Source: Octopus sinensis (taxonomy: Eukaryota). Taken from it: a stretch of DNA of 64,000 bases. Below, piece after piece: positions 3,491-54,326 of the stretch. Made by a program: the position numbers and the translations under genes. Under the pieces are notes generated by a model, which was given only the letters and a program-made list of their open reading frames with translations, ran no database searches and had not been told where the DNA came from. Each line of letters begins with the position of its first letter. The first letter of the stretch is position 1. The stretch lies in the NCBI RefSeq assembly GCF_006345805.1, contig NC_043006.1, positions 80,166,001 to 80,230,000 on the forward strand. Reading direction: 5' to 3'.

Positions 3491-5524
3491 TTAATTAACC
3501 GAGCCTTCAGTAGATAGAGCCATTGATATTGTTTGAGGAGCAGAAGAAACATCAGTAATTTCTTTTGTCGGCAATCTTGCAATTTTGTGCAAATTATTAA
3601 GAATATTGAGGCGAACAGTCTTTGTTGATAGAAACGATACACAAATAAATAATCCAACGAATGAGTTGACAATACAAAATAACAGAGAAAATTCTTCAAT
3701 TCTTGTAAACGCATAAAGAAATGCAATTGTCCATGTTAGACCCATGATAAAGAATAGTTTTAAGTGAATAAAAAATTCATTTTTGTTATGTTTTGATAAA
3801 TATTTTGAAGAAAGCTTTCTGGTAACATAAAGGCCTCTAGTGGTGAAAATAAATGCTATTATATTGAGACATAAAATAATCATTACGGGGATTCCAAAAA
3901 GCCATAGCAGACTTTTTCCATTTTTAATCCAGCAAATACCTTTTCCATATTCTGGGGAAAGTCCATGATTTTCAGGTGTGTACTCAAATATCAGTGATAC
4001 TATTACTATTACAAGTGGACAGATCCAAGCATACAAGGAACACAATACAAATCTCTTGGTGTGTTTTCCTTTACTTCGAAGTTGTGTAAGTCCTGAGAAA
4101 GTGTGACAGGCATCAAATGATATAACATTCATCCAGAAGAAAGACGCTAGAAAGGAATAATGCATTACTACTGCTAAAGATTTACACAGCACTGTAAATT
4201 TAGTGACTTGTGATGAGATAAGAAATAGAAGCTCAGCTACAAACAGTGCTGATAAAAGACTAATGAGTAATTTACCTGGTAAGGTACGAAGATCAGGTAT
4301 ACAGAGATAAACTATAATAGTGATTGCTAGAGCTGGGACAGAGATTGCTAGTCCCACTAATGTGATATAGCTCTCAGCTACGGAGTATTTTGATATACCA
4401 TTGATATTTGATATATTATTGGTACCATTGTTTATACGGATACTTATTATACCTTGAGAATCACGAGTGAATTCTGATTGGTTCAGCAAACGTTGGGTAT
4501 TATTTAAGTAGAGACGACCGTCACTAGTAATGTAATACTCAGATTCATTTAATCTTGTTGTCGTACTCTTTAGTTGAGGATGGTAAATAACTTGTCGACA
4601 TTTATTGGTATAGATATCGTAGACAGCGTGTTTTGAACAGGGTGGCAACTGTACAAGTCTATGTTCCGTCCCATTTGTTACCTTTATGGTATTTGTAGAA
4701 TACTTGAAAAGGATTGTTAGTGGTGATGACGGCACACTTCCATCATGTTGCATTTCCGAACAGGAGAAATTACACGGAATTTCAGAAACTCCGTTGCATT
4801 TGGCACAACCTCTGTTTTTGTAAATCTTAATATCTCCACCTTCAGTACATTTCTTACTCTTAGGTAAATATATTAAGGACATGGCCCCAGAATCACATGC
4901 AGTTCTTTTTTCCGTATTATTGTTATCTTGAAGACACTTCGAAATATATGGAATACAGGAATACAAATATTTATTCAAATCTCCTGAAGGAAGTCTCAAG
5001 GTTGGCCTACATTTTCTCTCTTTCACATAACTGAATATATTTTCGAAGCTTATATTAGAGATGAAATAGCAGTTATATAAAAGATTCCAAAGAATGAATT
5101 CCTCTCCATGACACAGAGCGCAATATAGGTTCCTATAGAGTTTTTTACTTGTTTTACCAAAAGCAGGAATGGATTGCAGTTGATCATTTGAATCAGGACG
5201 TTCACAGTTGTATACATGCTCCTTAACATCATGGTTAGGTGGACAACGGTCAAATTGATAATAAGAAGAGTAAGCAACATTTCTACAACTGTAATATATT
5301 GAAGGATAGGGTTGTTTCTGATTAGAGGTGATGTCATTAATCATATCAGAACAACATTCATTGTAGAGGTAGCAATTCGAGCGACACGAACAGCGTTTAG
5401 GTGCTCTAAATTTGGGAGAAACAGAGCACAAAGCTGGGCTGCAGTTGTCGAAGTCTTGTGCATGCGATACAATATATGAGAAAAGTAGGAGAGGAAGAAA
5501 ACACAACTGAATAAATGCTGCCAT
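3491..5524 (-). CDS. Methuselah-like (class B/7tm_2-like) GPCR with SMB-like Cys-rich ectodomain, paralog 1 (677 aa, uninterrupted CDS)
   Basis: ATG start and hydrophobic signal peptide (MAAFIQLCFLPLLLFSYIVSHA); CSCRSNCYLYNECCSD SMB-like motif; seven hydrophobic segments from YITLVGLAISVPALAITIIVY; class-B-like TM2/TM3 motifs LPGK..SL and HYSFLASFFWMN; two close paralogs in the window. Confidence 0.92.
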   Translation of the reverse strand: MAAFIQLCFLPLLLFSYIVSHAQDFDNCSPALCSVSPKFRAPKRCSCRSNCYLYNECCSDMINDITSNQKQPYPSIYYSCRNVAYSSYYQFDRCPPNHDVKEHVYNCERPDSNDQLQSIPAFGKTSKKLYRNLYCALCHGEEFILWNLLYNCYFISNISFENIFSYVKERKCRPTLRLPSGDLNKYLYSCIPYISKCLQDNNNTEKRTACDSGAMSLIYLPKSKKCTEGGDIKIYKNRGCAKCNGVSEIPCNFSCSEMQHDGSVPSSPLTILFKYSTNTIKVTNGTEHRLVQLPPCSKHAVYDIYTNKCRQVIYHPQLKSTTTRLNESEYYITSDGRLYLNNTQRLLNQSEFTRDSQGIISIRINNGTNNISNINGISKYSVAESYITLVGLAISVPALAITIIVYLCIPDLRTLPGKLLISLLSALFVAELLFLISSQVTKFTVLCKSLAVVMHYSFLASFFWMNVISFDACHTFSGLTQLRSKGKHTKRFVLCSLYAWICPLVIVIVSLIFEYTPENHGLSPEYGKGICWIKNGKSLLWLFGIPVMIILCLNIIAFIFTTRGLYVTRKLSSKYLSKHNKNEFFIHLKLFFIMGLTWTIAFLYAFTRIEEFSLLFCIVNSFVGLFICVSFLSTKTVRLNILNNLHKIARLPTKEITDVSSAPQTISMALSTEGSVN

Positions 5525-7174
5525 TTAAAAAGATATAATCGACAAGTAATAATTGACCTTTAAGTCGTAGGGATACTCTAAATGAATTCAAGCAAAAGAC
5601 CTGATATGTATTTTCGATATGTAGTTTCTACACATTGGCGGCATTCAGGAGTATTGTTAGTAACCCTTGTATTTCAGCTCACTAGTGATGGAAACAATAC
5701 GAAATTGCCAGCAATGAAATATTTTCATTTCTAAATGGAGCTCTGTATTCGAAGATGATACTTGTGTCTGTAAAATAAAAAGTATATAATTACACACGTT
5801 ATCATAAGCACAGGTACATATGTAGGCATCCATTCCAATTCAGGCACACAAGCACGCACACATATGCATTATATGCAGGTGAAGTCAGATGTGGGGACGT
5901 GCACCGTTGCAGCATTTTGCTACATTCACCATTTGTTGGTATATTTCCGGGACCACTCGGTTAACAAGTCGAGTTGAGCACCAGTCAGTCCCCACCTCCA
6001 CGAGGCACCTCAGCATCTGCAGCGGCCCGCAGCATGTGGATGATCAACACGAGCCGTCATCCCAGCCGGTCCCTGAGGGAAGAGTACATATTAAGCAAAG
6101 TTTAACTCAGATATTCAAGAAACATGGCCATACAGACTGCGCTATCGCTTCCGAATCATACAAGTAATATGACATATCCCACTTTGTTAGTAGAGTCGTT
6201 GGTTGAATCCAAAATTGGACCAATGGTAACACATCATCCTGTTGATCATCCTAGTATCAAAGGATTTCAAAGCGGCCCCTGAGGTTCCGTACAGTCCAAG
6301 TGTCACAAATATAGTGTAGAACAGGAAAGACCAGAAATCCAAAGCTCATAGAATGTAATCTTTAGTGATGTATTATACAAGTTAAAATTTCTAACCGATT
6401 ATATTTATTTGTAGTTTACTTTTAAATGTCACAATCTATGATATATATATATAATTTGAAATATTCTGCATATTATAACTATTAAGAAATGTTCAACGTT
6501 TACACCATTTTATGTAGAGAGAAAATAGTTTACGTCTGATCACTTCATGAGACCTAACAATCTTCAAGTTTAGACTATACTAGACATCTGTTTCCTTAAG
6601 TGGATATATGTTGTTGATATATCCTATCTCTCTTGATATCTAATTGGAGTGTTGTAAACGACTCCCTGACGATAACCGCTCGCCTGAGCTTGCATGTTGC
6701 GTACCATCTCTGCAAAATAACTTCTCATTTGCAGTGACCTTATAGCCTGAGGTAGATCATCACGATCTGTGAACTCACAAGGATCCCCAGTAAAGAGTAC
6801 ATAGTAAGCAGGTTCTAACTAGGAAAATCGAGAAACATGGTCAAATAGATTGAGGTGGCTTTCCCAGAGAGGTTGAAGCTGAAAAAAAAATTGATACCTT
6901 CTCATCCGAATATAAGATGAAAGGTGATAGTGTTGATGCCAACTGGGAAAACAAAATGTCTTTAAAATGCATGTAATGTATATGCACATAGCCTCTGATT
7001 GTATATATGGTATGGGATTGTTAAAAGAACGGGGCAACGTGCTTTCTAAATGTTTTGCGGCGAAAACATCTCAGTAAAATTTTGTAAATGTATTTTGGAA
7101 TATTAAATTTATTTGCTGTTGAGTGATGACAAATTGGATATTTATTGTTTTGTAGCAACATCAGTTATTTAGAA

Positions 7175-7506
7175 ACGCATTAGAGCCTTCAACAAAATTG
7201 CCATCGAAGACGTCATATTAAAATTCAGCTTCTGTCGAACGACCTGCACGAATGATTTGTTTATAGTAATCAAATACCCGCGCTGGACATTTGTTCACTC
7301 TCTCCATCAAATCGACATTGTCTGAACAGGTGCACTGTATTTCACGGGTTAAGTGTCGAACACTGATCGCAGAGCAACGTGAGGTGAAGTGTTTTGCTCA
7401 AGGACACTTCACTCAAGAACACCACGCACCACCCAGTATAGGTATTGAAATCACGATCTAGTGATCGTAAGTGCAACACACTAACCACTAGGCCATGCGA
7501 CTTCAC
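7175..7506 (-). mobile_element. tRNA-derived SINE
   Basis: Minus-strand head gtgaagtcgcatggcctagtggttagtgtgttgcacttacgatcactagatcgtgatttcaatacc has A-box and B-box-like motifs; similar head at 26993-27287. Confidence 0.7.
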
Positions 7507-7507
7507 A

Positions 7508-7711
<204 letters not shown>

Positions 7712-7862
7712 AATCTCTGAGAAACAGCTTTTGTTATATTTCTGCTGCTTTTAAATAAACCATATTACTCTACCTCCGGTATTTCAGTACTCTTTTTGCC
7801 ACTTTGTTTCACATTTATGTGCTTACTCCGGTATATATATATATATATATACATATATATAT

Positions 7863-7908
<46 letters not shown>

Positions 7909-8021
7909 TTGCACCAAAGGACAGTTGCCACTAAAATACACGATATTCAACATTGCACCAAGTGAAGAGATAAAGAAAGAAATATACAATTGATGACAGA
8001 CTAATGACATTGCTTTCGAAT

Positions 8022-8204
8022 CTTATAACAAGGCCAGCAATTTCAGAGGAGGGGGAGGTCGATTACATCGGCCCCGTTGCTCTTATTTTATCGCCACTGA
8101 AAATACGAAAGAAAAAGTCGACAACAGGGGAATTTGAACTCAGAACATAATAATGTTCGAAATACCGGTAAGCATTTTGCCTGGTGTGTTAACTATTCTG
8201 TCAG
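8022..8204 (-). mobile_element. Degenerate SINE, family A (head ggcggcgagctggcagaaacgttagcacg)
   Basis: Matches the better-preserved copies at 37164-37395, 45903-46119 and 50312-50595 (aagtcgac...gaatttgaactcagaac...aagcatt). Confidence 0.75.
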
Positions 8205-8754
8205 AACAAGCAAAAATTAATAACTGCAGCTTGATATAACATAAGCAAAGTGAGATGCCGAATCACTATGTCTTTCTACGCGTGTGCCTATCTTTCTTCA
8301 CCGGGCAACCTAGGATCAACAAAATCGATTCCGCAGCCAAACAAATTCAGTATTTGGTGATCAAGCAACTTGGAAATTTGTCACAAACCTGCACATTAGA
8401 ATGGAGGGGATGTTACTTGATATGATTCCCTTCCAGTTTTTGGCTGTTGGATGAATAAGAGTGAGAATATTGTGACCGAACGACCTCATAAAAAGAGCTT
8501 CCAGAGCTTGAACATATTAATATAATCGACGAACGATATTCAGGCACATTTGTTTTCATCTTTCATTTTTACAGTTTGTTTTTAGACCGACCAGGACTTT
8601 ACTCTTGTATCTAACGAAGGAGTAAATCCGAAACTCTTTAACTTTTGGTCTGTAATTTTTAAACTCTCTCTCGAGTCGACCAAATCATACTAACTGTAAA
8701 CGTTCCTAACACTTATTTTTTAGGCTTGTTATTCACATTTATTTTGCTGCACAT

Positions 8755-8812
<58 letters not shown>

Positions 8813-8865
8813 AAACAAGTCAAAAATAGAAAATGCTAAGATGATTTTATAGTGAATCTTTCAGT

Positions 8866-9230
8866 TCGTGCTAAGGGCGAGGTGCGTTTGCCCGTCTCCG
8901 TCGGTTAGCCGTGCCTGCGCTTTACGTGGAGCGACGGGCCCGGTCGAGAAGAGCGCGTGGATTCACCGACCGCCGCTTTCGCGGCAGCGACGGGGCTCTC
9001 GTCTGCGACCTGCGGACGCCGCGCGCCTGCCGGCCCGACGGGAAACGGGTCGCGACGACGGATCGGAGGGGAAGTGCATCCGATGCTGGCGCCCCTGAAA
9101 TCGAACGCCGACGAGGCGGCAGACGACCGCCCGCGGAACGAGCGGCCGCCACCGGCGCGTTCGTCGACGACGACGGCGCCTCGGCGGGAAGCAGCGGACT
9201 GAGTCCCCTCGCGATCGCGGTTTCCACCCT
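8866..9230. other. Very GC-rich insert, possibly a dispersed 28S rDNA expansion-segment (D2-like) or spacer fragment
   Basis: Roughly 70% GC by eye with abundant CpG, in AT-rich flanks; the minus strand has gggtggaaaccgc... and gcacttcccc...cgcgacccgttt, loosely recalling D2 core motifs; identity not established. Confidence 0.35.
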
Positions 9231-9231
9231 T

Positions 9232-9272
<41 letters not shown>

Positions 9273-9276
<4 letters not shown>

Positions 9277-9699
9277 CTTTGCAATAGATCCAATACTTAA
9301 ATTATCCTTTCTTCGAAGCTTAATAATCTGCTGACGAATTGGTAACGGAGAAAGTGGCATTATATTAGCAAAGTAAACTGCAAATATTCTTACTAATGTT
9401 TAGTAAACGAACCGTCACGTAAAAAAATTCAAAACATTAAAGTTCGCCGGTTAAATATAATAAAACACGGAGTAAAAGCAACCGTTCTGATCATTTTGGC
9501 CGCCATGGGTTTTACAGTAAATCACTAAATCATCCATAACTTTTGTATTATACTCTCAAATTATACCAAAATCTCAGGCAATAACAAATAATATCGTATT
9601 TATTGTCTGTGAAACTTATAGCATATAAAACAACTTTGATAAAAAATTATATCTTCTTTTCTGACGAAAACAATGCCGTTCTGAACATTTTGGCCGCCA

Positions 9700-9702
<3 letters not shown>
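9273..9702 (-). mobile_element. Tc1-like transposon left end (IR/DR-type TIR) and first 29 codons of the transposase
   Basis: TA|CAGTGGCGGCCAAAATG terminus at 9702; 24-bp direct repeat at 9676-9699 and 9482-9505; ATG at 9360 gives MPLSPLPIRQQIIKLRRKDNLSIGSIAKI (HTH-like), truncated by (TA)n. Confidence 0.75.
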
Positions 9703-9721
<19 letters not shown>

Positions 9722-9744
<23 letters not shown>

Positions 9745-9838
9745 CAGACAAAACAAATATACACACATACACACACCTAACATATATATATATAAAGTTA
9801 CACAGAGTACAAAAAATATGAGGAAAATATGTATACAT

Positions 9839-9928
<90 letters not shown>

Positions 9929-10533
9929 TGAGGGAGATAAATTAATATTAATTTTAATATCAATTTAAAACCAGTAGTCTAGCATACAAAAAATCTGAGA
10001 AGTCAGAGAAAATTCTAATATATGTGTATATTGGCAGGGCTGAACTGCTAGGTAGTCGGCTGTATGCTAGGAACAGATCATCAACGATCAAACTACAAAG
10101 GGAAATTCTCTAGAGGAAAAATTCAGCGAACACCAGAACCAAATTTGGCGGGCAGGACAGATGAAAATTTATATAAAAGACAGACTTAAATGCATACCTC
10201 GGTTTCGGCCTTTAACAAAGGAATTACTTACATAAGTCTGCATTTAAGTCTGTTTTTTTATATAAATTTTCATCTGTCCTGCCCGCCAAATTTGGTTCTG
10301 GTGTTCGCTGAATTTTTCCTCTAGAGAATTTCCCTTTGTAGTTTGATCGTTGATGATCTGTTCCTAGCATACGGCTGACTACCTAGCAGTTCAGCCCTGC
10401 CAATACACACACACACACATATATATATATATGTATGTATACATATTTTCTTCATATTTTTTGTACTCTGATTAATTTTATATATATATATATATGTTAG
10501 GTGTGTGTATGTGTGTATATTTGTTTTTGTCTG

Positions 10534-10560
<27 letters not shown>
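9722..10560. repeat. Long foldback/palindrome; inner arms ~10028-10197 and ~10236-10405
   Basis: ttggcagggctgaactgctaggtag...cagacttaaatgca is inverted as tgcatttaagtctg...cagttcagccctgccaa; outer arms ttcacagacaaaacaaatat... and ...atatttgtttttgtctgtgaa. Confidence 0.92.
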
Positions 10561-10582
<22 letters not shown>

Positions 10583-10590
<8 letters not shown>

Positions 10591-11798
10591 AAAGTGAAGT
10601 TGTGTGAGTGTCTGTCTCCTACGATTTAGATTCCTAACTACTCCCACATTTTGCGGTGCAGTTTAACCAAATTCGGGTATCTTATAGTCGTGATGATTCA
10701 TATCGAGCCCGTCTGAGTATTAGCGCGCGTCTACGATGAGTCTACGATTTTAAAAATAATTTACCATAATTTTTTTTCATTTTAACGCATATTTTTTTCC
10801 CTCCCTCGTGAAGCTATGGGGAAGGGAGTGTAAGGAAATCAACATCGTAAAGCGTTGTCAAGGAGACCAGTGTTCTTTTAGAACAACGACTTCATGGCTT
10901 GAAGACACCAAAACAGAAATGGCTAAGAAAGCCCGAAAGCAAATTCTACAAAATCGGGAAACACGCCACACAGGGAAGGTTTCCCGTGCAAATAATTTGC
11001 ACAACCGAATGTTATAGTTGTTGCACAACTTTTACTTAAAAAATATTATCCAAACACAAACTTTTGAAGGCAATATTGTATGGCGATGGTACTTGTGAAA
11101 TATGGTAATGGATTTAGTAGCCAAAAGGAGAGAGCAGAGGCATAGTATGGTGGTGGTGGAGGCGGTGGTAGTGGCAGCGGTGGTGGCGGTGGTGCTGGTA
11201 GTGGTGATGGTGGTCGTGGTCGTGGTGGTCGTCGTGTTTGTGGTGGTGGTGGTGGTGGTGTTGTTGTTGTTGTTGGTGGTTGTGGTGGTCGTGGTCGTGG
11301 GGGTGGTGATGATGGTGGTGGTGGTGGTCGTGGTGATGATGGTGGTGGTGGTGGTGGTTGTGGTGGTCTTCGTGATGGTGGTGGTGATGGTCATGGGCGT
11401 AGTGGTGGTGGTGGTCATGGTGGTAGTGGTGATGGTGTTGGTCGTGGTGGTGGTGGTGGTGGTGGTGGTGGCTGAAGCTGTCGTCTGGGTTCTTCCAATC
11501 TTTTCGTGTGTCGGTGGCGGCGTTGGCGTTCATGCTCGCACCTGCACCTGTGTAGCTCATCCCCTTCTTCCCTCCCTCGTGAAGCTGTGGGGAAGGCATG
11601 GTAGGGAAATCAACGTCGTAAAGCGTTGTCAAGGAGACCAGCGTTCTTTTAGAACAACGACTTCATGGCTTGAAGTCGCCAAAACAGAAATCGCTAAAAA
11701 AACTGAAACAGATCCACAAAAACGGCAAAAACCGCCACACAGGGCAGGCTTCCTGTGCAAACAAGTTGCACAACCGAATGTTTTAGTTGTTGCACAAA
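10583..11798 (+). mobile_element. Helitron-related composite: 5' segment, a duplicated ~230-bp block and a (GGT)n tract
   Basis: 10583-10790 repeats the 5' part of 11799-12180; block 10800-11030 is repeated at 11570-11798; (GGT/GTC)n at ~11150-11470. Confidence 0.65.
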
Positions 11799-12179
11799 TC
11801 TTTATATATAAAAGTGAAGTTGTGTGTCTGTCTCCTACGATTTAGATTCCTAACTACTCCCACATTTTGCGGTGCAGTTTAACCAAAACCGGGTATCTTA
11901 TAGTCGTGATTCATATCGAGCCCTTCTGGGTATTAGCGCGCGTCTACGATGAGTCTACGATTTAAAAAAAATTTGCCATCATTTTTTCCATTTTAATGCA
12001 TTTTTTCGCTATTATATAAGGGAAGTAACTCTCTAAAAATGTCTACGATGAGTCAACGATTTAAAAAAAATTACCATCATTTTTTATTCCATTTTTAATG
12101 CATTTTTTGCTATAACTCTCTAAAATGCTTATATAGTTATTTCCCTTACAAACCCGAGCAACGCTGGGCGATACTGCTA

Positions 12180-12180: not shown

Positions 12181-12259
<79 letters not shown>

Positions 12260-13789: not shown

Positions 13790-13795
13790 TGATAC

Positions 13796-31984: not shown

Positions 31985-33976
31985 TTAATCAGACGCTTTG
32001 ATTGGGATATCCATTGATTGTTCAGTGGAAGAAACAATAGGCTCTTTTGTGGAGAATTTTGTAATTTTATGCAAATTCCGAAGAATACTGCGACGAACAG
32101 TCTTTGTTGATAGAAATGATATACAGATAAATAATCCAGCGAATGAGTTTAAAATACAAAATAACAGAGAAAATTCTTCAATACTTGTAAAGGTATATAG
32201 AAACGCAAATATCCATGTTGGTCCCGTGATAAAGAATAGTTTTATGCAAGCAATGAATTCGTCTTTATTATGTTTTGAGAAATATTTCGAAGAAAGTTTA
32301 CTAGTCAAATAGATTCCTCTAGCGGTGAGAATAAATGCAATGAAATTAAAGCATAATATAATCAGTACGGGTGTTGCAAAGAACCACAGCAGACTTTTTC
32401 TGTTTGTAATCCAGCAAATACCATTTCCATATTCTGGAGAAAGTTCATGTCGTCCTGGTGTGTACTCAAATATCAGTGATACTGTTACTAATACAAGTGG
32501 ACAGATCCAAGCGTACAAGGAATACAAGACAAGTTTCTTAGTACCTTTCTCTATATTTCGAATTTTTGTAAGTCCTGAGAAAATGTACCAGGTATCACAT
32601 GATATAATATTCATCCAGAAGAAAGTAGCAAGAAAGGAATAGTGCATGATAACTGCTAAAGATATACACAGCGCTGTAGATGATGTTACTTGTGATGAAA
32701 TAAGAAAGAGAAGCTCAGCTACAAACAGGGCTGATAAAAGACTAATGAGTAATTTACCTGGTAAGGTACGGAGATCAGGTATACAGAGATAGACTATGAT
32801 AGTGATTGCTAAAGCTGGAATAGAGATAATTAATCCCACTATTGTGATATAATATTCAGCAGTAGCATACTTTGCCATTAAAGTGGTATCATTCTTTACA
32901 CAGATACTTATTATACCTTGAGAATCACGAGTGAATTCTGATTGGTTCAGCAAACGTTGGGTATTATTTAAGTAGAGACGACCATCGTTGGTGATGTAAT
33001 ACTCAGATTCATTTAATGTGGTTGTCGTACAATTTAGTTGAGGATGGTAGATAACTTGTTGACATTGATTGGTATTCATAGCATAAAGAGCATGTGTTGG
33101 ACAGGAGGGTAGCTGCACAACAGAAACTTCCTTAAGCTGGTTATCTTTTACTACCAGTGAACTGGTATGATAATTAAAAAGCATAGTTAAAGAAAACTTC
33201 CGTGATTTAAGCTTTCGTTTTCGTTCATGATTGCAATAACTATTGATTTTGTTTCTTTTTAATCCATTGCAAGTAGCACAGTGTATGTTCCTGAATATAT
33301 TAACTTGATCTGTCACTAATGCCATGGGTTTAGACTCACATTTAAATCTTTGTTTTCTATTTATGTTATCTTGGGGACAATCCGAAATGTATGAAATACA
33401 GGAATACAAATATTTCTCCAAATCTTCTGAAGGAAGCTTCACAGTTGGCCTACATGTTCCCTCTTCGACATAACTGGTTATATTTTCGAAGCTGATATTA
33501 GAGATGAAATAGCAGTTATATAAAAGATTCCAAAGAATGAATTCCTCTCCATGACACAGAGCGCAATATAGGTTCCTATATAGTTTTTTACTTGTTTTAC
33601 CAAAAGCAGGAATGGATTGCAGTTGATCATCTGAATCAGGACTTTCACAGTTGTTTACATGCTCCGTAACATCATGGTTAGGTGGACAACGGTCAAATTG
33701 ATAATAATAAGAGTCATCAACCTTTCTACAACTGTAAGATATTGAAGGATAGGGTTGTTTGTGGTTAGATGCGGTTTTATTAATCTTATTAGAACAACAT
33801 TCATTGTAGAGGTAGCAGTCCGGACGACACGAACAACGATTATTGTTATTACTGGTATTATCAACGCATAAAGGTGGAGGACATCTCCGACGCGATCGTT
33901 TATTGTAAACTTTCATTTGAGACACCAAATATGGAAGCGAAAATATAACCATGAAAAATGGAAGAAAATTCCCCAT
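31985..33976 (-). CDS. Methuselah-like GPCR with SMB-like ectodomain, paralog 2 (663 aa from the ATG at 33976)
   Basis: The track ORF starts at a TTG (34012); the first ATG at 33976 gives signal peptide MGNFLPFFMVIFSLPYLVSQ; CSCRPDCYLYNECCSN motif; 7TM region collinear with paralogs 1 and 3. Confidence 0.9.
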   Translation of the reverse strand: MGNFLPFFMVIFSLPYLVSQMKVYNKRSRRRCPPPLCVDNTSNNNNRCSCRPDCYLYNECCSNKINKTASNHKQPYPSISYSCRKVDDSYYYQFDRCPPNHDVTEHVNNCESPDSDDQLQSIPAFGKTSKKLYRNLYCALCHGEEFILWNLLYNCYFISNISFENITSYVEEGTCRPTVKLPSEDLEKYLYSCISYISDCPQDNINRKQRFKCESKPMALVTDQVNIFRNIHCATCNGLKRNKINSYCNHERKRKLKSRKFSLTMLFNYHTSSLVVKDNQLKEVSVVQLPSCPTHALYAMNTNQCQQVIYHPQLNCTTTTLNESEYYITNDGRLYLNNTQRLLNQSEFTRDSQGIISICVKNDTTLMAKYATAEYYITIVGLIISIPALAITIIVYLCIPDLRTLPGKLLISLLSALFVAELLFLISSQVTSSTALCISLAVIMHYSFLATFFWMNIISCDTWYIFSGLTKIRNIEKGTKKLVLYSLYAWICPLVLVTVSLIFEYTPGRHELSPEYGNGICWITNRKSLLWFFATPVLIILCFNFIAFILTARGIYLTSKLSSKYFSKHNKDEFIACIKLFFITGPTWIFAFLYTFTSIEEFSLLFCILNSFAGLFICISFLSTKTVRRSILRNLHKITKFSTKEPIVSSTEQSMDIPIKASD

Positions 33977-34626
33977 TTTATAATGTATTAATACAGGCCA
34001 ATATAATCGCAAATTACAATTATATTTTCACAAGTTCTTTAGTTCCTTGATTTTTTTCTAGCACCAACTAAATAATACGAACGTTCGTGAAGTTTGTTAG
34101 ATCGAAGACACTGATATCAAATCCTGAACGTAAGGCAATCATTATTGATTGCATTGTTGCACTTGTATATTTTAAGCTTTGTGGACGTATCTGAAAAAAA
34201 GTAGAAAAAAGAAATAACATTAAACGGTATAATGAATGTGCGCACATATATGCAAACTATAAAATTCATGCATTTTGTATCGTAACATTTGTCATTTTAC
34301 ATAGAAAATACTTGCAACTGTGATTGTGGTTTTTAAATTAATACAATCTGCTTGGCAGCAACTGTTTATAACAAATGTACTGGTAAGAACTTTTCTTACA
34401 AAATATTATACGCCTCGATATTTTATGTTCTACTCCTATTATCTAAGAGACAAAAAAAACTTTTATTGCCGGCACAAAGGGCATTATGCTTGGATTACGA
34501 AGTTAAATGAAAATCTATTACGATATGTTTAAATGTACACTCTCAGAATTTCCTAATAATGTTTCCATACCAATATCAAATACTTTTTTAGATGGAGAAA
34601 TTATTGCAGAGAATATATGGAATAGC

Positions 34627-41224: not shown

Positions 41225-43245
41225 GATAGGCAATTACTAGCTGATATCCTGTTTACCACTTATGTGGAAATTATTGACTGGAATACTGGAAGAGTCAATG
41301 TACGAACATCTAGAAAAATATGGAGTCCTGCCACATGGGCAGAAGTGTTACAAGCGTAAGTGCAGATGTACCAAGGATCAACTTTTGATTGATAGAACTG
41401 TACTCAGAGATTGCAAGAAGAGGAAAAGTAACATAGCCATATCATGGATCGACTATCGTAAGGCGTACGATATGATCCCACATTCTTGGATTATGGAGTG
41501 TATGAACCTGTTTGGGATTGCATTGAATGTTGAGCGATTGCTTGGAAAAAGTATGGCGAATTGGAGGACCAACTTGACGGCATACGGAAGAAGTTTAGGG
41601 ATAGTAGAAATTAAGAGGGGCATCTTCCAAAGCGACTGCCTGTCCCCACTGATCTTTGTACTGTGTTTGATACCATTGACACTGATTCTGAGGAAAGCAA
41701 AAGCTGGGTATGTATTCAAAAGCAGGCAACGAAAAGTTAACCATTTGTTATTCATGGATGACCTCAAACTTTATGATAAAGATGAATCCCAAGTCAATTC
41801 CCTCCTTGATACGGTATATACCTTCAGTGCTGATATCAGAATGGAGTTCGGACTGAGAAAGTGTGGTGTGTTAGTATTGAAGAGTGGCAAAATCAAATGT
41901 ATGGGCGAACTAACGATATTGTCAGGGGAGGTTATGAAGCAAATTGAAGAGACGGGCTATAAGTACTTGTGGATTTTGGAAATGAATAAATTGATGGAGA
42001 AAGAAATGACATAAAAATTTAAGGTGGAGTACTTACACAGACTGAGACTGAGCCTTAAGTCGAAATTAAATGGACAAAATAAGATCGAAGCTATCAACAC
42101 CTGGGCGCTTTCACTCCTTAGATATGGAGCAGGGGTAATCGCATGGACAGTAGACGAACTAAACAGCTTAGACAGAAAAACAAGAAAATTGCTAACTAGA
42201 TATGTGTTACCCCACCAAAAATGTGACACAGACAGACTGTATGTACCAAGAAAAAGAGGGGGAAGAGGACTTATTGAATGCGAACACAGCATTAGAGCAG
42301 AAAAAAATAACATAGCATGGTATGTAAAAAATGCCACAGAACCGCTATTATTAGAAGTAGGAAGGTCAGGCCTGTGTAGGATGGAAGATTTCAAAGATAA
42401 AGAACTATACAAGCAATTGAAAACAAATGGAACTGAAAATAGGTGGGTAAAAAAAAGAATGCATAGTCAATTTCATAAGGATATTGAAGATAAGACAGAC
42501 ATAGAAAAAAGATGGCTGTGAATAACTTAAAACCGGAAACGGATGCCCTAATATGTGCTGCTCAAAAGCAAACACTAAGAAAAAACTACATAAAATAGAG
42601 AAAAGATAACATATCAGTAAGTGTTAAGTGCAGAATCTGTGGACAAAACGGTAAAATCGTATGGCATATTACCAGCCAATGTACGCCATTAGCCCAGAAG
42701 GAATATGAGACGCCACGACAATATAACCAATATAACACTTTGCAACAAGTATGGACATGACAGCGCAAAACATTGGTACGACCACAAACCTGAAGGCATT
42801 GTCGAAAATAGAAATGCAAAGATCCTGTGTGGTTTTATGATTCAGAGCGACCATGAGATTGAGAATTGGAAGCCGGACATAGTTTTAATTGAAAAAGAAA
42901 ACAAATTATGCTGGATCATAGACATAGCATGCCCAGCTGACAAGATATGCGATAAGGAGGAGAGAAAATTCGAGAGATATGACAGGTTAGCTTGGGAATT
43001 TAAGCAGTTGTGGTCGATGAAAATGGTAGCAATAGTACCAATAATTGTCGGAGCCCTGGGAGCAGTGAGCAAAAATCTCGAGAAGTACGTGAAACAAATA
43101 GGGGCTGCAATGAGGGTGGAGCCCTTGTAGAAAACAGCACTGCTTGGAACCGCTCGAATACTCCGGAAGGTGCTCGAAAAATAAGGTGTTACCTTAGTTC
43201 ACTTGTAGTGAACAGCTGACACAGCGTTAGAAGCTGTGCAAAGGC
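41225..43245 (+). mobile_element. 5'-truncated R4/Dong-like RLE-type LINE, flanked by (AAT)n
   Basis: RT motifs [37 protein letters not shown]; CCHC CRICGQ...HITSQC; RRHD; RLE motif KPDIVLIEK...IIDIACP; few stops or frameshifts. Confidence 0.92.
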
Positions 43246-46400: not shown

Positions 46401-46614
46401 TTTTCTCCCACCCCCCACCTTTTATTTGCTTACTTTTTAATTTTAATTTTTTTTTCATTTTTTCCAAAGCTACAATACAGGGAAGAGTTTGCGCACTCCC
46501 AGTAACAGGAAAGAACACACAATGCTGCACACACCTCAGTAACAGGGATGTGTAGCAGGTGATGTAGAAATTTGCCTGAAACTACTGAGTGTTGAACAAT
46601 TGTATAATAAAAAT

Positions 46615-46708
<94 letters not shown>

Positions 46709-46729
46709 GAGAAACAATAATAATAATGA

Positions 46730-47050
46730 TAGAGAAACTTTCAAATTAGAAAGACATGGAAATAGAGGTAAATCGAATGTGGAATTTAAAAGCAGAAACA
46801 ATTCCTATCATAGTAGGCGTATTAGGTCTGATAAAAAAATATTCAGACAAATACATAAAAACACCAGGACTTACAAATATATATAACATACAGAAAATTG
46901 CACTACTGGGCACTGCACACATCCTACGTAAATCACTTTCAATAGAGTAACAAACAGAGCATCACAACAAATCACAGCACATACCCAAGGCACACAGAGC
47001 TGCGCTCGGTAATGAAGTGAAAGCACGCTATAAAAATAAAACTACTGAAT
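46730..47050 (+). mobile_element. 3' end of an R4/Dong-like LINE within AAT/AAC/AAG repeats
   Basis: MEIEVNRMWNLKAETIPIIVGVLGLIKK...IQKIALLGTAHILRK, then a 3'UTR and an aataat tail. Confidence 0.85.
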
Positions 47051-47058
47051 AATAATGA

Positions 47059-47089
<31 letters not shown>

Positions 47090-47499
47090 AAGAAGAACAA
47101 CAACAACAACAACAATTATAATAATAATAATGATATTAATAATAATAATAATAATGATACGAGCAAGAAGAGCAGGGCTGTAGGAGGAAAAGGAAAAAGA
47201 ACACTGTCGGTTATATAATGTTACAATATTATACACAAATTACATCTTCTGACAATCAAGTCCAACTCCGGGCCTTCCAACTCCGAGAAGGGAGTGAAAA
47301 GGCGAATGTCTGCTGCCTTCAAATAACCAGTGGTCAGGGTAGGTTGAGCTCGTTAGCCTTAGATAGCAAGTAGCCAAGGAGAAGGACCACTCTGATATCA
47401 AAACTAAGGGAGCAACCTCTCTTCCGCCGTAGTGGGCAACCTTGATAGAGATGATGTCTCAATAAAATACTAATTTGTAGCAATTCTAAAAACACACCT

Positions 47500-48600
47500 C
47501 ATTTATGTGAATATGTCAAACTAATCACCTAACGATAACGGTGTGAACAGGACTGGAGCCAATGGTGAAAGTGCCACACCCAGCAGGTGTCTGATTGTGC
47601 AGACACCTGGGTGAGGCCGGTCGTAATATGGAAACTGCTAGCCATACTGCGGGAAAAAGTGAAGCAAATAAACATGATAGTTGTAGAGTGCTACAATGAG
47701 ACCATCCCAGTAGAAATTACAGAACTGAGATTATCTGATCCAGCAAGAGCAATACAAAAGAATAGGTAGCTGTCAGTGTTGGACTTAGAAACTATCAAAG
47801 GAAGGATATCTGGAGATGTTGAGCATAAAAGAAACAAAAATAGCCAAATGGAAGAACTGAACAATTTTTCACAATAATATACGGACAAGAGTGGTGAAAG
47901 AATCGAGATCAGAGAATGATTAATCAATGAAGATCAGGCGATAATGAACTGGTTTGTGGATCTATTAAATGCAAAAGAGATAGAATTTATGTGTGATTGA
48001 TCAGTGAGACTAAATCAAGAAACAAGCAAAATCAATAAAAAAATTAGCCAAGGTTGCAAGTAGAAAGGATGGGATTGAAGATCAATGATAACAGAACCTT
48101 GACGGAAAGAAAAGGAAATACACGACCTTGGTAGGAAAGGAGAATATAAGGAGATATAAGCTCCCTGAACAGTGTAGTGTCAATACTTATCAGAAAAGGA
48201 AAAAAGAGAATTGAAGAATGGTCGTTAAATTTATTTCTTTATTGCCCACAGGGGAGTAAACATAGAGGTGACAAACAAGTACAGACCAAGGGATTAAGCC
48301 GATAACATCAATCCCAGTGCGTAACTGGTACTTATTTAATCGACCCCGAAAGGCAAAGTCGACCATGGTCGTAAAGTTGAAAAATTGAAGAAGTATGGTG
48401 TTGATACAAAAGGACTGAATGTTGTAACCGAAGAGCTGAAGCAGCGCATACTTGCCAAGAAGGAAAAACTAACTACATTTGAGCAATGGAATAAACAATA
48501 CTGGTAAAACCGATTATTTAGAATCGATCAAATACAATACGATCAAGAAATTAATGGCGGCCTGGGAAAGATTAGTTCCTAATGCAGAAGACAGTCGATA
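47500..48600 (+). mobile_element. N-terminal part of an R4/Dong-like LINE ORF, with a SINE fragment inserted at ~48226-48364
   Basis: TELRLSDPARAIQKN..LS.LDLE and KKYG...KGLNVVTEELKQRILAK...NRLFRIDQ, typical pre-RT segments; atggtcgt duplicated around the SINE fragment. Confidence 0.65.
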
Positions 48601-48604
48601 GTTT

Positions 48605-48787
48605 CAAATTTTGGCACAAGGCTAGCAACTGCGGGACAAAAGGTAAATCGATTACATCGGCCCCAGTACTCCACTGGTACTTATTTTATCAACCCTGAAA
48701 GGATGAAAGGTAAAGTCAGCATTGGCAGAATTTGAACTCAGAACCTTAAGACAGTGTGCTAACGATTCTACTAGCTCGCTCGCCAGC
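48605..48787 (-). mobile_element. Family-A SINE, degenerate
   Basis: Same core as the other family-A copies. Confidence 0.75.
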
Positions 48788-49014
48788 CTTGATCCATTTA
48801 ATACATAGTTTTACATGTATATTTTTTCATTTGTGTAACCTAACAAGATAATTGTTTTCATTAACATTTTCGTTAACATTTTCATCAATTATCGAAACGG
48901 TCGTAACTGATTAATAAATGTAATAGTGTCATATGCATCCCTCTGTTTCTCTCTCCCCTCCTCTCTCTATATATGTGCGTATGTGCTTCTGTATATGTAT
49001 GTGCTTGTGTATAT

Positions 49015-49265
49015 GTATGTATGTGTGTGTGTGTAAATGTATGTATGCATGTATGAATGTATGTATGTATGTATGTATGTATGTATGTATGTATGTATGT
49101 ATGTATGTATGTATGTATGTATGTATGTATGCATGCATGTATGTATGTACGTATGTATGTATGTATGTATGTATGTATGTATGTATGTATGTATGTATGT
49201 ATGTATGTATGTATGTATGTATGTATGTATGTATGTATGTATGTATGTATGTATGTATGTATGTA
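49015..49265. repeat. (TATG)n microsatellite
   Basis: Direct reading; similar tracts at ~15145-15220, ~59590-59672 and ~59986-60054. Confidence 0.97.
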
Positions 49266-49494
49266 TCGCAGGAAGAAGTTACAAGAGAGCTCCTAATGTG
49301 AAGCAACGTATAACTATGAAAGATTTCACATGGCGAAATTAAAAATATATTTTTGAAGATAGATATGTAGTAGTAGGGGTACTCTAAAACTATAGTCATA
49401 TTTTTGGTACGGCATATGTTGGTATATGTTGGTGGGAAGGCAGTGTAGGAATTTTGACAAAAATATACGCATTACAAACATATATGGAAAGAAA

Positions 49495-51373
49495 AAACGC
49501 TAAAGGTTGGCAATTCCTTAAGGGGCAAATATAAGGTAAAACGAAAGTATAGAATGTGGGAATGCTTATCAAACATGGTGGAAAGAAAAGAACTTATTGA
49601 ATATGAAGAGAATATTTAGAAGGCGGTAAGAATTTGAAGAAATATGACACTGTTGAAAAAAAGTAGGCCAGTTTGAGTAATATAAACTATGAAAAAAAAG
49701 TATTTGCATAGCAACGTAGAGGTGAGTAGATGTGAAGTACATGAAATGTAAGAATTTAGAAAGAGTACTGGAGCTATTTTCACTAGGATGGCTTGATTTC
49801 AAAAGAAAGGTGTAAGCAAAAAGCGAAGAAAAATAAAAATTAACGATAGTTTTACACTTTTTCAGAAGGAAGAAAAATAGCTTAGAAAGTAATATGACGT
49901 AGAGGAGTAACATAGATGCATATTTAGAGGATAAGATTTGAAGCCTACGAGAAACTATAAGACGTTATTATTAAAATATTGTAAAATATGGAGAAATTCT
50001 ATGGAAGACAATTTAATCAAAGTGTGAGTTTAAGGAATAAATATCCAGTTAAAGGGAATTAACTATTTCAGTTGAGTAATGGTCTCTAATTTAGACAGGG
50101 CAAATTATTTCTGAGGACTGTTTTAGTTGATTATATCAACCTCAAGAATTAGTAGGTACTCAATCCAGTCGATCCCGGAAGGCTGAAATGCAAGGAAGAT
50201 CTCAGCAAGATTTGAACTTAACCGAAACAAATATTGCAATGAAGTGTTTAGCGAGATCTAATATATTTGTTAACTCGTCGTCTTGTTTAGGTTGAATAAT
50301 GGCATATATAAGGCGGCGAGCTGGCAGAAACGTTAGCACGCTGGGCGAAATGCTTATTGGTATGTGCTGGCAGAAACGTTAGCACGCTGGGCGAAATGCT
50401 TATTGGTATTTCGTCTGTCTCTACGTTCTAAGTTCAAATTCCGCCGAGGTCGACTTTGCCTTTCATCCTTTCGGGGTCGATAAATTAAGTACCAGATACA
50501 CACTGGGGTCGATGTAGTCGACTTAATCCCTTTGTCTGCCCTTGTTTGTCCCCTCTATGTTTAGCCCCTTGTGGGCAATAAAAAAATAAAAAAGCCATAT
50601 ATAATTGACATTCATACATGAGAAATTAAGCAGGAGATTTCTTATTTATTTTAAAAACCTTCGTATGAAAAAATACTGCAGAATTCTGAACAGGCAAAAT
50701 CATCTCCCACCTCTCTTCGGATCCATCGAAGAAGCCCATCTGTGAAATACATATGTAAAGTGCCAAACAAGCCGCATTTGGTGAGAAAAATCATTCTGTT
50801 CATGGCGCTCTACTCTCCATCCATTAAATCTCAAATAGAGGCAATACCTCCAGCAGGGTGGTGGCCACGGAATTCGGAATGATTCGTGACTCTGTAACGA
50901 CTTGCTACTAGCCAAAACTATAAACAGCGCTGGAGCAACTAATTGAAGCTGGATCGTCTAGTTGAGGTGAGTACGGTGAGCTCATGCGCACGCCAATAAA
51001 ACAGTTTGGTCGTGTAGTAAGGTGTAGCGGTTTGAATGTTAACTGCCAATGGAAATCTGGATGAATCCAAGCTCCGGTGCTTGTCTCTGTCGTAGTATAA
51101 AATATTTCAACGTGTCTTTCAAAGTGTGAAATGGAGCAGGCTTACATGTCAACATGGGTTGGATAGAAACTAGTCGGCCTAAGTTTGTTGTTTCAAATAA
51201 CTCCAAATAAAACGCTAAAGGTTGGCAATTCCTGAAGGGGCAAGTATGAGGTAAAACGAAAGCATAGAAAGTGGGAGTGCTTACCAAACATGGTGGAAAG
51301 AAAAGAACTTATTGAATATGAAGAGAATATTTAGAAGGCGGTAAGAATTTGAAGAAATATGACACTGTTGAAA
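49495..51373 (+). repeat. Dispersed ~164-bp direct repeat (49495-49658 and 51210-51373)
   Basis: aaacgctaaaggttggcaattcct...gacactgttgaaa occurs twice, about 93% identical by eye. Confidence 0.9.
50312..50595 (+). mobile_element. Full-length family-A SINE with an internal tandem duplication and a 9-bp TSD
   Basis: TSD catatataa at 50303-50311 and 50596-50604; gctggcagaaacgttagcacgctgggcgaaatgcttattggtat occurs twice. Confidence 0.9.
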
Positions 51374-52322
51374 TATCTCCAAATAAAACATACGCTGAGA
51401 ACAAAAACAATATATGTAAATACTTAAGCATTATGTTAAATTATTTCTGTTATATATACATTTTTGTATTATCATTTCGGGTAATCTGATAAAATAAAAA
51501 TAATCATTGATAATGTAATCGGAAATCAATGATTTCATAAAACGAAGTATAATGTTCTTAAGATTTTACAACTTTATTATTCAGTATTAGGCCAATCCTG
51601 TGTTGAAGACCCTTCGGCAAAACAGTTTATGTTTTAATATAAGAAATATTATGTGAATAATAAATAGAAACCACAGAATACAGATAAGTTTAAATAAATT
51701 TCTGGGACCTCTTTTTTATTTTCATCATAATTAGCTAACAAATATCAGGTTACATATTGCGCTTGTGAGCATGCGTAAAATATATTAGTAAAGTAGTTCT
51801 TAATGTGAGATATAAATAAGTTTTCATGAAAGTAGTATTGTGTAAGATCATAAGAGACTTTACGCAGTATACATTGATTAGGTTTATAATATAGTTTTAG
51901 AGATTTCAGCAAAAAGCTATATTAATTCATATATTAATTCATAGTGTGGTAACGACGTTTCGAGATGACGATTGCTAATATTATTTTCCTAATGATATCA
52001 GCACTAATGTTTTGTAATTTAAGCAGAAATAGGTTAAAGGACATTTTTCTGTTGGTGTTAATTCAAGTGTGTTATTTTCGTACGTAAAAAAATTATAAGC
52101 TTTAAATAGAGATTGGAAATGCAACATTATATGGAAGTCTGCAAAACAGATGAGGTCATTGGTATGACTATTGACTTGTCTTGAGTAGGTACAAAAAACC
52201 TGGTTTTAAGAACGGTTAAATGAATATAGTTAGTAAATTCACGTCTTTCCGAACAACTTCAGTAGCGTAAAGTCATGATAAGAATTATTAACATGGATTT
52301 TTGCATGGACTACTTGGTAATG

Positions 52323-54326
52323 TTAGTTATATGAAACACTCATATCCGTTATTTGTGTTTTGGAAGTTGGAGAAATATCGGTGTGAATAATGGCAGAGAA
52401 CTTAGGAATCTTCTGTACGTGTTTAAGGAAATTACGACAGACAATCTTTGTTAATAGAAATGATAAACATATAAATAATCCTATGAATGAGTTTAAGATA
52501 CAAAATAACAGGGAAAATTCCTCAATTTTCGTAAATATATACAAGAAGACGAATATCCATGTTAAACCCATGATGAAACTTAATTTTATATATATGAAGG
52601 GCAAAGTTTTATTGTGTTTAGATAAATATTTCGAAGAAAGTTTCTTGGCCAAATGCAGCCCTCTAGCGGTTAGAATAAATGCAAATATATTAAGACATAA
52701 TATAATTATTACAGGTATTGCAAAGAGCCACAGCAAACTTTTTCCGTTTGTAATCCAACAAACACCATTTCCATATTCTGGAGAAAGTCCATGATTTCCA
52801 GGAATATACTCAAATATCAGTGATACAGTTATTATTACAAGTGGACAGATCCAAGCATACAAGGAATATAATACAAATCTCTTGGTATGTTTTCCTTTAC
52901 TTCGAATTTGTGTGAGTCCCGAGAAAGTGTGCCAGGCATCAAAAGACATGACATTCATCCAGAAGAAAGTCGCTAGAAACGAATAATGCATTACTACAGC
53001 TAAAGATTTACACAACACTGTAGATGTAGTAATTTGGGATGAGATAAGAAAGAGAAGCTCAGCTGCAAACAGTGCTGATGAAAGACTGATGAGTAATTTA
53101 CCTGGTAAGGTACGGAGATCAGGTATACAGAGATAGACTATAATAGTAATTGCTAGAGCCGGAATAGAGATAATTAATCCCACTAATGTGATATAACTTT
53201 CAGCAGTAGAATACGTTGGTATTATAGTGGTACTATTCTTTACACAGATACTTATTATACCTTGAGAATCACGAGTGTATTCTGATTGGTTCAGCAAACG
53301 TTGGGTATTATTTATGTACAGGAGACCATCGCTTGTAATATGATACTCAGATTTATTTAATGTTGTTGTCGTACAATTTAGCTGAGGTTGGTAGATAACT
53401 TGTCGACATTCCTTAGTATTCATATCGTAGACAGCAGGTTTTTGACAAGAGGTAAACTGCATGACAGAATCTCGATTACGGCGGTTATCTTTTATTACCA
53501 GAGAATTGGTATGGTAATTAAAAAGGATAGTTAAGGAAGGCGTAAATGGGACGTCAAAAACAACGCGTGGATATCCACAGTAATCAACGACTTCGTCAAA
53601 CCCGTTACATGTAGCACAGTGAATGTTTCTAAATACGTTAATTCCAGATTTTACTAAAGCCATTGGATTAGATTCACATTTAATTCTCTGTTCCGTATTA
53701 TTGTTATCTTGAGGACAATTCGCAATGAATTCAGTACAAGGATATATATATTTCTCCAAATCTTCTGAAGGCGGTTTCACAGTTGCCGAACAATTTCCAT
53801 CTTTCACATTATTTAATATATTTTCGAAACTTACATTTGGTCCTAAATCACATTGATATAAAAGATTCCAAAGAATGAATTCCTCTCCATGACACAGAGC
53901 ACAATATAAGTTCCTATAGAGTATTTTACTTGTATTTCCAAAAGCAGGTATGTTTTGCAGTCGATCATTTGAGTCAGGATTTTCACAGCTGTTTACATAC
54001 TCCATAACATCATGGTTCAGCGGACATCGATCGAACTGATATACACTATAACGAAAATAATCAACGTATCTACAACTATAATATATTGATGGATAAGGGC
54101 GATTTTTCTGATCAAAATTGGTATTATTAATCATGTCGATACAACATTCATTAAAGAGGTAACAATCCTGACGACACGAACAACGCTTTTGATCATTTTT
54201 AGCTGTATCAAAACATAAGGGTGGAGGACATAAAGAAATACTTCCGCCATGGAAGTCTGTTAGTATTTGTGGTGATGTAAGATTTGTAAAAGAAAGCATA
54301 ATCATGAAAAGTATAAGAATTTCCAT
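52323..54326 (-). CDS. Methuselah-like GPCR with SMB-like ectodomain, paralog 3 (667 aa, uninterrupted CDS)
   Basis: Signal peptide MEILILFMIMLSFTNLTS; CSCRQDCYLFNECCID; 7TM region collinear with paralogs 1 and 2. Confidence 0.92.
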   Translation of the reverse strand: MEILILFMIMLSFTNLTSPQILTDFHGGSISLCPPPLCFDTAKNDQKRCSCRQDCYLFNECCIDMINNTNFDQKNRPYPSIYYSCRYVDYFRYSVYQFDRCPLNHDVMEYVNSCENPDSNDRLQNIPAFGNTSKILYRNLYCALCHGEEFILWNLLYQCDLGPNVSFENILNNVKDGNCSATVKPPSEDLEKYIYPCTEFIANCPQDNNNTEQRIKCESNPMALVKSGINVFRNIHCATCNGFDEVVDYCGYPRVVFDVPFTPSLTILFNYHTNSLVIKDNRRNRDSVMQFTSCQKPAVYDMNTKECRQVIYQPQLNCTTTTLNKSEYHITSDGLLYINNTQRLLNQSEYTRDSQGIISICVKNSTTIIPTYSTAESYITLVGLIISIPALAITIIVYLCIPDLRTLPGKLLISLSSALFAAELLFLISSQITTSTVLCKSLAVVMHYSFLATFFWMNVMSFDAWHTFSGLTQIRSKGKHTKRFVLYSLYAWICPLVIITVSLIFEYIPGNHGLSPEYGNGVCWITNGKSLLWLFAIPVIIILCLNIFAFILTARGLHLAKKLSSKYLSKHNKTLPFIYIKLSFIMGLTWIFVFLYIFTKIEEFSLLFCILNSFIGLFICLSFLLTKIVCRNFLKHVQKIPKFSAIIHTDISPTSKTQITDMSVSYN

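Follow-up and report, generated by a model that had tools for sequence, protein, structure and literature searches.

The window analysed here is a stretch of 64,000 nucleotides (nt) of the Octopus sinensis genome (CM016868.1:80,166,001-80,230,000, in the same orientation as the record), which contains exactly three long open reading frames (ORFs), all on the minus strand and referred to as g1, g2 and g3 (Table 1). Each is a complete single-exon coding sequence (CDS) for a class B G-protein-coupled receptor (GPCR) with a Cys-rich ectodomain of the DUF8401 family in front of a 7tm_2 seven-transmembrane (7TM) core, and the three are very probably functional members of a much larger tandem cluster. 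A sequence-only reading of this stretch had described them as a dispersed, same-strand array of orphan Methuselah-like receptors, specific to the lineage and lying in DNA filled with transposable elements. Its three intact ORFs of about 2 kb, spaced by roughly 26 and 18 kb, are indeed present, the spacers measuring 26.5 and 18.3 kb, and there is no other long ORF.

Three paralogous genes in a larger cluster

The longest remaining ORFs in the window encode 250 residues (a reverse-transcriptase fragment) and 247 residues (a TGG-repeat ORF), and the chance of 667 codons without a stop at 35% GC is about 4e-22. The g2 ORF as called (31985..34012, 675 residues) begins at TTG, and the ATG at 33976 gives the shorter protein listed in Table 1. 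A tblastn search of the window with the three proteins recovered no further copies or decayed fragments of g1-g3. The proteins are 63-68% identical in pairwise comparisons, while the nucleotide likeness among the copies ends at the CDS edges and the flanks are unalignable. Strong 3' splice sites are found 214 nt upstream of the ATG of g2 and 289 nt upstream of that of g3, which implies non-coding 5' exons, besides the single coding exon, for g2 and g3 at least. The g3 site is kept in O. bimaculoides; no acceptor in the 5' untranslated region (UTR) of g1 was found within 1.5 kb.

The array extends beyond the window, as had been supposed. At least 15 annotated loci, distributed over both strands of chromosome CM016868.1, make up a cluster of about 600 kb, with located members spanning 79.83 to 80.44 Mb (further ones at 79.83, 79.88, 80.36 and 80.44 Mb). 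The same-strand arrangement is true inside the window only, as the orientation flips just outside it: g3, g2 and g1 lie on the minus strand, and P0006 and P0009, 44-66 kb to the left, lie on the plus strand. All located cluster members are single-exon CDSs, and so are their oyster and limpet relatives, which indicates that the intronless CDS is old and does not stem from an octopus retrocopy event. The family comprises 670 representative clusters at E <= 1e-30, many of them aligning over the ectodomain as well, and takes in proteins of oyster, limpet, penaeid shrimp and mantis shrimp. Bivalves and gastropods have both the architecture and the intronless CDS, and crustaceans have the architecture, so that only the expansion can be called lineage-specific. 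One oyster homologue (L006, a single-exon CDS in Ostrea edulis, OX387704.1:14,702,699-14,708,831) is wholly enclosed by a GLTP-domain gene of the same strand and is probably nested in one of its introns.

The gene-family expansion itself has already been published and annotated. Ritschard et al. (2019, Proc R Soc B, PMC6408891) described an octopus-specific, Methuselah-like GPCR 'group 4', and hence the earlier supposition of a receptor array is not new. Group 4 represents the same family and the orthologous cluster: its O. bimaculoides members all lie on two scaffolds, are attributed to tandem duplication, evolve under purifying selection with a homogeneous omega of 0.306, and are expressed in the sucker, skin and axial nerve cord. 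The intact O. bimaculoides orthologue of g3, A0A0L8GGP0 (P0001, 87% identical), is Ocbimv22034321m on Scaffold69694 and is listed there in group B/4; P0004, P0015 and P0008 are likewise listed as group 4 members. The published expression shares of A0A0L8GGP0 are 0.61 in the sucker and 0.15 in the skin, with a Tau of 0.94. Its same-strand neighbours are dominated by the axial nerve cord or the sucker, and the orientation flips further along the scaffold (PMC6408891); the O. sinensis run of same-strand genes followed by a flip repeats this layout. The published group was defined on fragmented O. bimaculoides scaffolds with a 7TM signature as its basis, and the passages and tables consulted make no mention of the family of the ectodomain, the lack of introns in other molluscs, an internal splice site or the fused O. 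sinensis RefSeq models. The additions made here are the classification of the ectodomain, evidence for the fusion of two intact genes in RefSeq, and a testable splice-site hypothesis. A literature search found neither a characterised orthologue nor any later functional characterisation of these receptors, in keeping with their description as orphans.

Table 1. Features of the window (positions counted from its first letter; a slash marks the splice cut)
Feature	Positions	Strand	Description
g1	3491..5524	-	complete single-exon CDS, 677 aa; DUF8401 ectodomain + 7tm_2
g1 CAG/GTAAAT	4270..4278	-	cut between 4276/4275; donor consensus and only seamless canonical acceptor for the g2-to-g1 chimera
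g2	31985..33976	-	complete single-exon CDS, 663 aa; DUF8401 + 7tm_2; RefSeq gene start = ATG 33976
g2 CAG/GTAAAT	32752..32760	-	cut between 32758/32757; inferred donor of RefSeq 'Mth-like 12 isoform X2'
g2 coding-exon start	34117..34215	-	polypyrimidine tract + CAG, AG at 34192-34191; TTTCTTTTTTCTACTTTTTTTCAG/AT, exon from 34190
Reverse-transcriptase fragment (RVT_1)	41262..42014	+	250 aa; only recognisable transposable-element coding relic in the spacers
g3	52323..54326	-	complete single-exon CDS, 667 aa, LOC115216264; DUF8401 + 7tm_2
ATAG/G acceptor in g3	52480..52485	-	Gly616; possible 621-nt in-frame intra-ORF intron removing TM2-6
g3 CAG/GTAAAT	53096..53104	-	cut between 53102/53101; donor of RefSeq isoform X3 (P0003) and of P0058 of the O. 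vulgaris orthologue
Frozen synonymous block in g3	53244..53312	-	~22 codons, NNTQRLLNQSE.TRDSQGIISIC, just before TM1
g3 5'-UTR 3' splice site	54616..54640	-	TTTCTTTTTCTTTTATTTTACAG/ATAC, upstream of ATG; homologous to the g2 site

A class B core with a DUF8401 ectodomain

In g1-g3, a signal peptide is followed by the Cys-rich ectodomain and then by a complete 7tm_2 core. All three match the Pfam 7tm_2 profile over positions 5-250 of 250 (E 4e-28 to 7e-31; in g1 residues 385-627, E 3.6e-28), and C439 at the top of transmembrane helix (TM) 3, the C523-W524 pair of extracellular loop 2 (ECL2) and G409 are invariant across 36 family members; the PGK residues and the CW motif are conserved family-wide. 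C439 and C523 correspond to the extracellular disulfide of class B. In a full-length AlphaFold model built from an alignment of 36 sequences, seven helices (TM1 369-400, TM2 407-429, TM3 436-468, TM4 480-507, TM5 528-563, TM6 574-599, TM7 602-624) and a following helix 8 are modelled at a predicted local distance difference test (pLDDT) score of 80-95. The full profile, the seven helices and the TM3/ECL2 cysteines identify g1-g3 as class B (7tm_2, PF00002) GPCRs. The HRM domain (PF02793), the criterion for the secretin-type class B1, has no Pfam match in the three proteins.

The ectodomain belongs to DUF8401. The exact g3 protein is present in NCBI, and its precomputed Pfam architecture, PF28443 (DUF8401) followed by PF00002, is that of every full-length relative and paralog; g1 and g2 were assigned by end-to-end alignment and 18 conserved cysteines. 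The Cys-rich ectodomains ascribed to these 7tm_2 receptors are confirmed by 23-25 cysteines in each (g1 and g2 being truncated in this count), of which about 18 are conserved across the family. Apart from 7tm_2, our own search gave no Pfam match above threshold in g1-g3. Weak Somatomedin-B-like matches (E 0.04-0.6) cover a CSCRxDCYLxNECC motif in the N-termini, for example at residues 38-64 of g3. Modelled alone, the ectodomain reached a pLDDT of 76.7 and had no PDB match at E <= 1e-3, and both the Methuselah ectodomain and the GAIN domain were absent among the 50 best fold matches listed for it. In the full-length model its last beta strand is joined to TM1 by a linker of about six residues.

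These results restrict the name 'Methuselah-like', which is acceptable for the 7TM core only. Mth and Mthl receptors are defined by their 7TM; the Mth ectodomain was acquired in arthropods and is missing from all non-arthropod members, some of which carry Somatomedin_B domains (de Mendoza et al. 2016, PMC4768249). The octopus receptors follow this pattern. They share with the Drosophila proteins the class B core, which in the g3 orthologue bears the Mth-like signature (CDD cd15039, E 1.1e-83 in the published InterProScan, PMC6408891), and a fly 'Mth2' protein was matched at E 1.4e-25 over the 7TM only. The Drosophila Methuselah ectodomain has ten cysteines and the Methuselah_N domain (PF06652), whereas the octopus family has about 18 conserved cysteines and no PF06652 match in g1-g3 at E up to 1. 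Thus the class given by the earlier reading stands for the core and fails for the ectodomain, and no link to the lifespan or stress biology of Methuselah is implied.

The closest solved 7TM bundles are those of adhesion GPCRs, both by structure (ADGRG2, CD97, ADGRD1 and ADGRL3, target TM-score 0.74-0.84, with secretin-class receptors ranking below) and by sequence (ADGRG2, D1, L3 and E5, E 6e-20, 24-27% identity to solved bundles). A large extracellular region is another common trait, and RefSeq calls two cluster members, P0016 and P0019, 'latrophilin receptor-like protein A'. It might be proposed on this basis that g1-g3 are latrophilin-like adhesion GPCRs, in which GAIN/GPS autoproteolysis precedes activation by a tethered agonist. 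However, neither GPS nor GAIN gave a Pfam match in g1-g3 at E up to 1, no GAIN domain is among the 50 best fold matches listed for the ectodomain model, inspection revealed no HL/T-type cleavage motif before TM1, adhesion-type repeats are absent, and the P0016 and P0019 models are N-terminally truncated. We regard an adhesion-type identity as very unlikely; DUF8401 is distinct from the Methuselah ectodomain and has neither GAIN/GPS nor a solved structural relative.

Selection, possible sequence exchange and spacers

The constraint on g1-g3 was estimated by pairwise Nei-Gojobori comparison. The ratio of nonsynonymous to synonymous rates (dN/dS) is 0.33-0.53 over the full length, with the 7TM at 0.18-0.36 and the ectodomain at 0.41-0.58, at overall pairwise dS values of 0.42-0.70. 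Pairs of deep paralogs (dS 1.3-1.9) show dN/dS of 0.30-0.38, and the closer pair P0028-P0202 (dS 0.62) shows 0.44. The genes are under purifying selection, as the earlier reading had proposed, and the selection is strongest in the 7TM. The intronless CDSs and the repeats around them could also fit young, non-functional duplicates or retrocopies in which decay has not yet begun. Nevertheless, the copies are old, as judged by their dS and unalignable flanks, their omega is well below 1, the single-exon CDS, found in oyster and limpet as well, is ancestral, the 5' UTRs of g2 and g3 are spliced, and the g3 orthologue is intact and expressed. An origin of this kind is extremely improbable.

The constraint is uneven along the protein. 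Between g3 and its O. bimaculoides orthologue the ratio of nonsynonymous to synonymous proportions (pN/pS) is 0.24 in the 7TM and 1.74 at ectodomain residues 201-300 (window ~53427-53726, minus strand), a significant contrast (Fisher p = 6e-5). Three of four orthologue pairs have their most divergent structured region here. Positive selection on this part of the ectodomain was considered and set aside, as the value of 1.74 is not significantly above 1 (p = 0.13). The segment 201-300 of g3 is a candidate ligand-specificity region.

A stretch of some 22 codons directly in front of TM1 shows the opposite behaviour. Over 120 kb, g1, g2, g3, P0009 and P0006 have zero synonymous differences in it, against an overall dS of 0.4-0.7, while deep paralogs vary freely. 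The block has no special RNA fold (z = 0.17), and neither the Rfam nor the tRNA scan of the window gave a hit. Its uniformity could come from gene conversion or from constraint at the nucleotide level. The partitioned trees conflict on g2, which groups with g3 in the juxtamembrane/TM1 part (97% bootstrap) and beside g1 in the N-terminal ectodomain (weakly, 61%); because of this disagreement, the mosaic appearance of g2 suggests gene conversion or recombination. The dS also changes several-fold along g2 when it is compared with g1 and g3.

The DNA between the genes is less rich in recognisable TEs than had been claimed. It does hold one RVT_1 fragment, and about 18% of the intergenic bases are repeated within the window as dispersed repeats, but the 18 further intergenic ORFs have no Pfam match and no other TE proteins were recognised in the spacers. 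Two ORFs on the same strand beside the RVT_1 fragment (42024-42521 and 42705-43130) are among those lacking a Pfam match, and the fragment with its neighbouring ORFs is consistent with a decayed retroelement. Microsatellites are numerous in the window. The 247-residue ORF at 11102-11845 (plus strand) is an artefact of one of them, a (TGG)n tract of 108 copies at 11148-11471, and not a gene.

An internal donor-like site and fused gene models

All three genes carry the motif CAG/GTAAAT in their LPGK codons, in intracellular loop 1 between TM1 and TM2, and several public gene models leave the reading frame at this point. The 432-residue P0003 (LOC115216264 isoform X3) is 100% identical to g3 over the shared part, which ends at '...DLRTLP', and continues with a 24-residue tail, DTSTKLKIYKCNNAINNDCLTFRI, encoded at 34188..34120. 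The stop of this tail (34119-34117) lies 141 nt 5' of the g2 ATG. The tail exon opens at a textbook 3' splice site, where the g2 coding exon also starts. The second such model, P0002 ('Mth-like 12 isoform X2'), is encoded by three RefSeq transcript accessions (proteins XP_036362740-42) and consists of g2 residues 1-431 and the last 281 residues of g1, with an ambiguous overlap of 45 residues in which CAG/GTAAAT is the sole position for a seamless canonical GT-AG join. In the independent annotation of O. vulgaris, five models (P0058, P0018, P0023, P0027 and P0041) exit the ORF exactly at the LPGK site, and the next residue in each fits a phase-1 split of GGT; P0058 rejoins at the ATAG/G acceptor, which exists only in g3 and its orthologue. 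That annotation, which used the data sets PRJNA718058, PRJNA791920, PRJNA547720 and E-MTAB-3957, mixed transcript and ab initio evidence, and either kind may underlie a given junction. The cross-unit joins of P0002, P0003 and P0023 are known from gene models alone.

The fused model has consequences for the public record. The exact g1 and g2 proteins do not occur in a collection of 15 billion sequences. No public protein contains the g1 ectodomain, the best matches of g1 being 74% (a paralog cluster) and 77% (the chimera P0002) identical, and the TM2-7 half of g1 occurs publicly only inside P0002. Fused or duplicated-ectodomain models are also found as P0204 in O. bimaculoides (XP_014775022.1, 999 residues) and as P0061 and P0023 in O. 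vulgaris. With such models in other octopus annotations, mis-merging of tandem members appears to be systematic across the annotated genomes.

Taken literally, the RefSeq structure would make g2 and g1 one gene, in which the ectodomain and TM1 of g2 are joined to TM2-7 of g1, while TM2-7 of g2 and the ectodomain of g1 are intronic remnants, much as in a locus of variable and constant exons. The three transcript accessions, the coincidence of the only seamless join with the conserved CAG/GTAAAT and the lack of a 5'-UTR acceptor within 1.5 kb of g1 speak in its favour. On the other hand, the supposedly intronic halves are intact and constrained in every pair (ectodomain omega 0.41-0.58, 7TM 0.18-0.36), and constraint in both halves at dS 0.35-0.7 is not expected of intronic remnants. 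The g2/g1 join falls in a stretch in which 126 of 135 positions are identical, where template switching or read mis-assignment would yield the same model and artefactual chimeras would look alike. The branch point and pyrimidine tract 5' of the LPGK site are not conserved in deep paralogs. We therefore judge a single fused gene improbable.

Altogether, we place at about 0.88 the probability that g1-g3 are three functional paralogous DUF8401 + 7tm_2 class B receptor genes in a tandem-duplication cluster of about 600 kb. Four points weigh against this conclusion. RefSeq models neither g1 nor g2 as a separate gene and has one fused 'Mth-like 12' instead; g1 has no clear O. bimaculoides orthologue (best identity 74%); the expression is taken from the O. 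bimaculoides g3 orthologue and applied to the O. sinensis genes by analogy; and the relative orientation of the ectodomain and the 7TM in the model is uncertain (predicted template-modelling score 0.47). On this reading, each product comprises a signal peptide, a disulfide-rich and glycosylated ectodomain of about 350 residues, an adhesion-GPCR-like bundle of seven helices and a short tail. The variable mid-ectodomain may recognise an extracellular ligand, the near-invariant juxtamembrane beta module may relay the signal to the helix bundle, and the receptor would signal through G proteins in sensory or neural tissue of the periphery (sucker, skin, axial nerve cord). Plausibly, the 5' splice site in loop 1 would also yield ectodomain+TM1 isoforms.

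The conservation of the internal site gives this last element some comparative support. CAG/GTAAA is kept in 10 of 10 octopus CDSs examined, three of them at 42-48% identity, and eight of these ten ORFs have no other strong donor-like motif. Across the ten CDSs, 23 of 95 amino-acid-invariant degenerate codons are codon-invariant, and three of them stand in a row only at CCA-GGT-AAA (a probability of about 0.014 for this pre-specified site). The reading as a splice site is weakened by the family-wide conservation of the PGK residues, which has protein reasons, and by the background frequency of the motif: judged from base composition, AT-rich DNA should contain AGGTAA once per 2 kb by chance alone. 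Two further possibilities were discarded. An ancestral intron at the LPGK site, lost in a retrocopy, does not agree with the oyster and limpet genes, which are single-exon and retain the PGK residues but lack the GT, as their Gly codon is GGC or GGA. Conservation of an acceptor was not found either, since the upstream branch point and pyrimidine tract vary in deep paralogs, and consequently only the donor reading has comparative support.

Donor use at the LPGK site, giving truncated ectodomain+TM1 products, is plausible from the motif and the models. Functional chimeric receptors, with the ectodomain of one paralog and TM2-7 of another, are unproven. A bolder proposal is that selection keeps CAG/GTAAA as a splice site, such that each gene would produce a full receptor and a single-pass ectodomain+TM1 form, the latter acting perhaps as a decoy or co-receptor, and read-through transcription along the run of same-strand genes would link each ectodomain to TM2-7 of the neighbouring paralog downstream, generating combinatorial diversity. 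We consider this unlikely as it stands. To our knowledge, combinatorial receptors from complete genes are an arrangement not known in another GPCR family. The nearest comparison is with the clustered protocadherins and UGT1A, in which same-strand tandem units likewise encode an ectodomain with the first membrane span, and the octopus models, though they are gene models only, similarly join an upstream unit to downstream sequence via a conserved donor. In contrast to those loci, every octopus unit is a complete receptor that closes with a constrained TM2-7 and a stop codon of its own, and no constant exon is common to the units.

For two of the window's three intact receptors, public protein sets offer nothing but a fused model, and any RefSeq-based counting, alignment or deorphanising of the family will miss the g1 ectodomain and the signalling half of g2. 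The name 'Methuselah-like' misleads as to ligand recognition, as the ectodomain is a domain of unknown function that has no solved relative. The DUF8401 ectodomain is a reasonable target for structure determination, considering that the g3 orthologue is expressed in sucker and skin. Finally, the conserved internal splice site offers a cheap and specific hypothesis, namely that these octopus receptors may also occur as truncated and chimeric isoforms.

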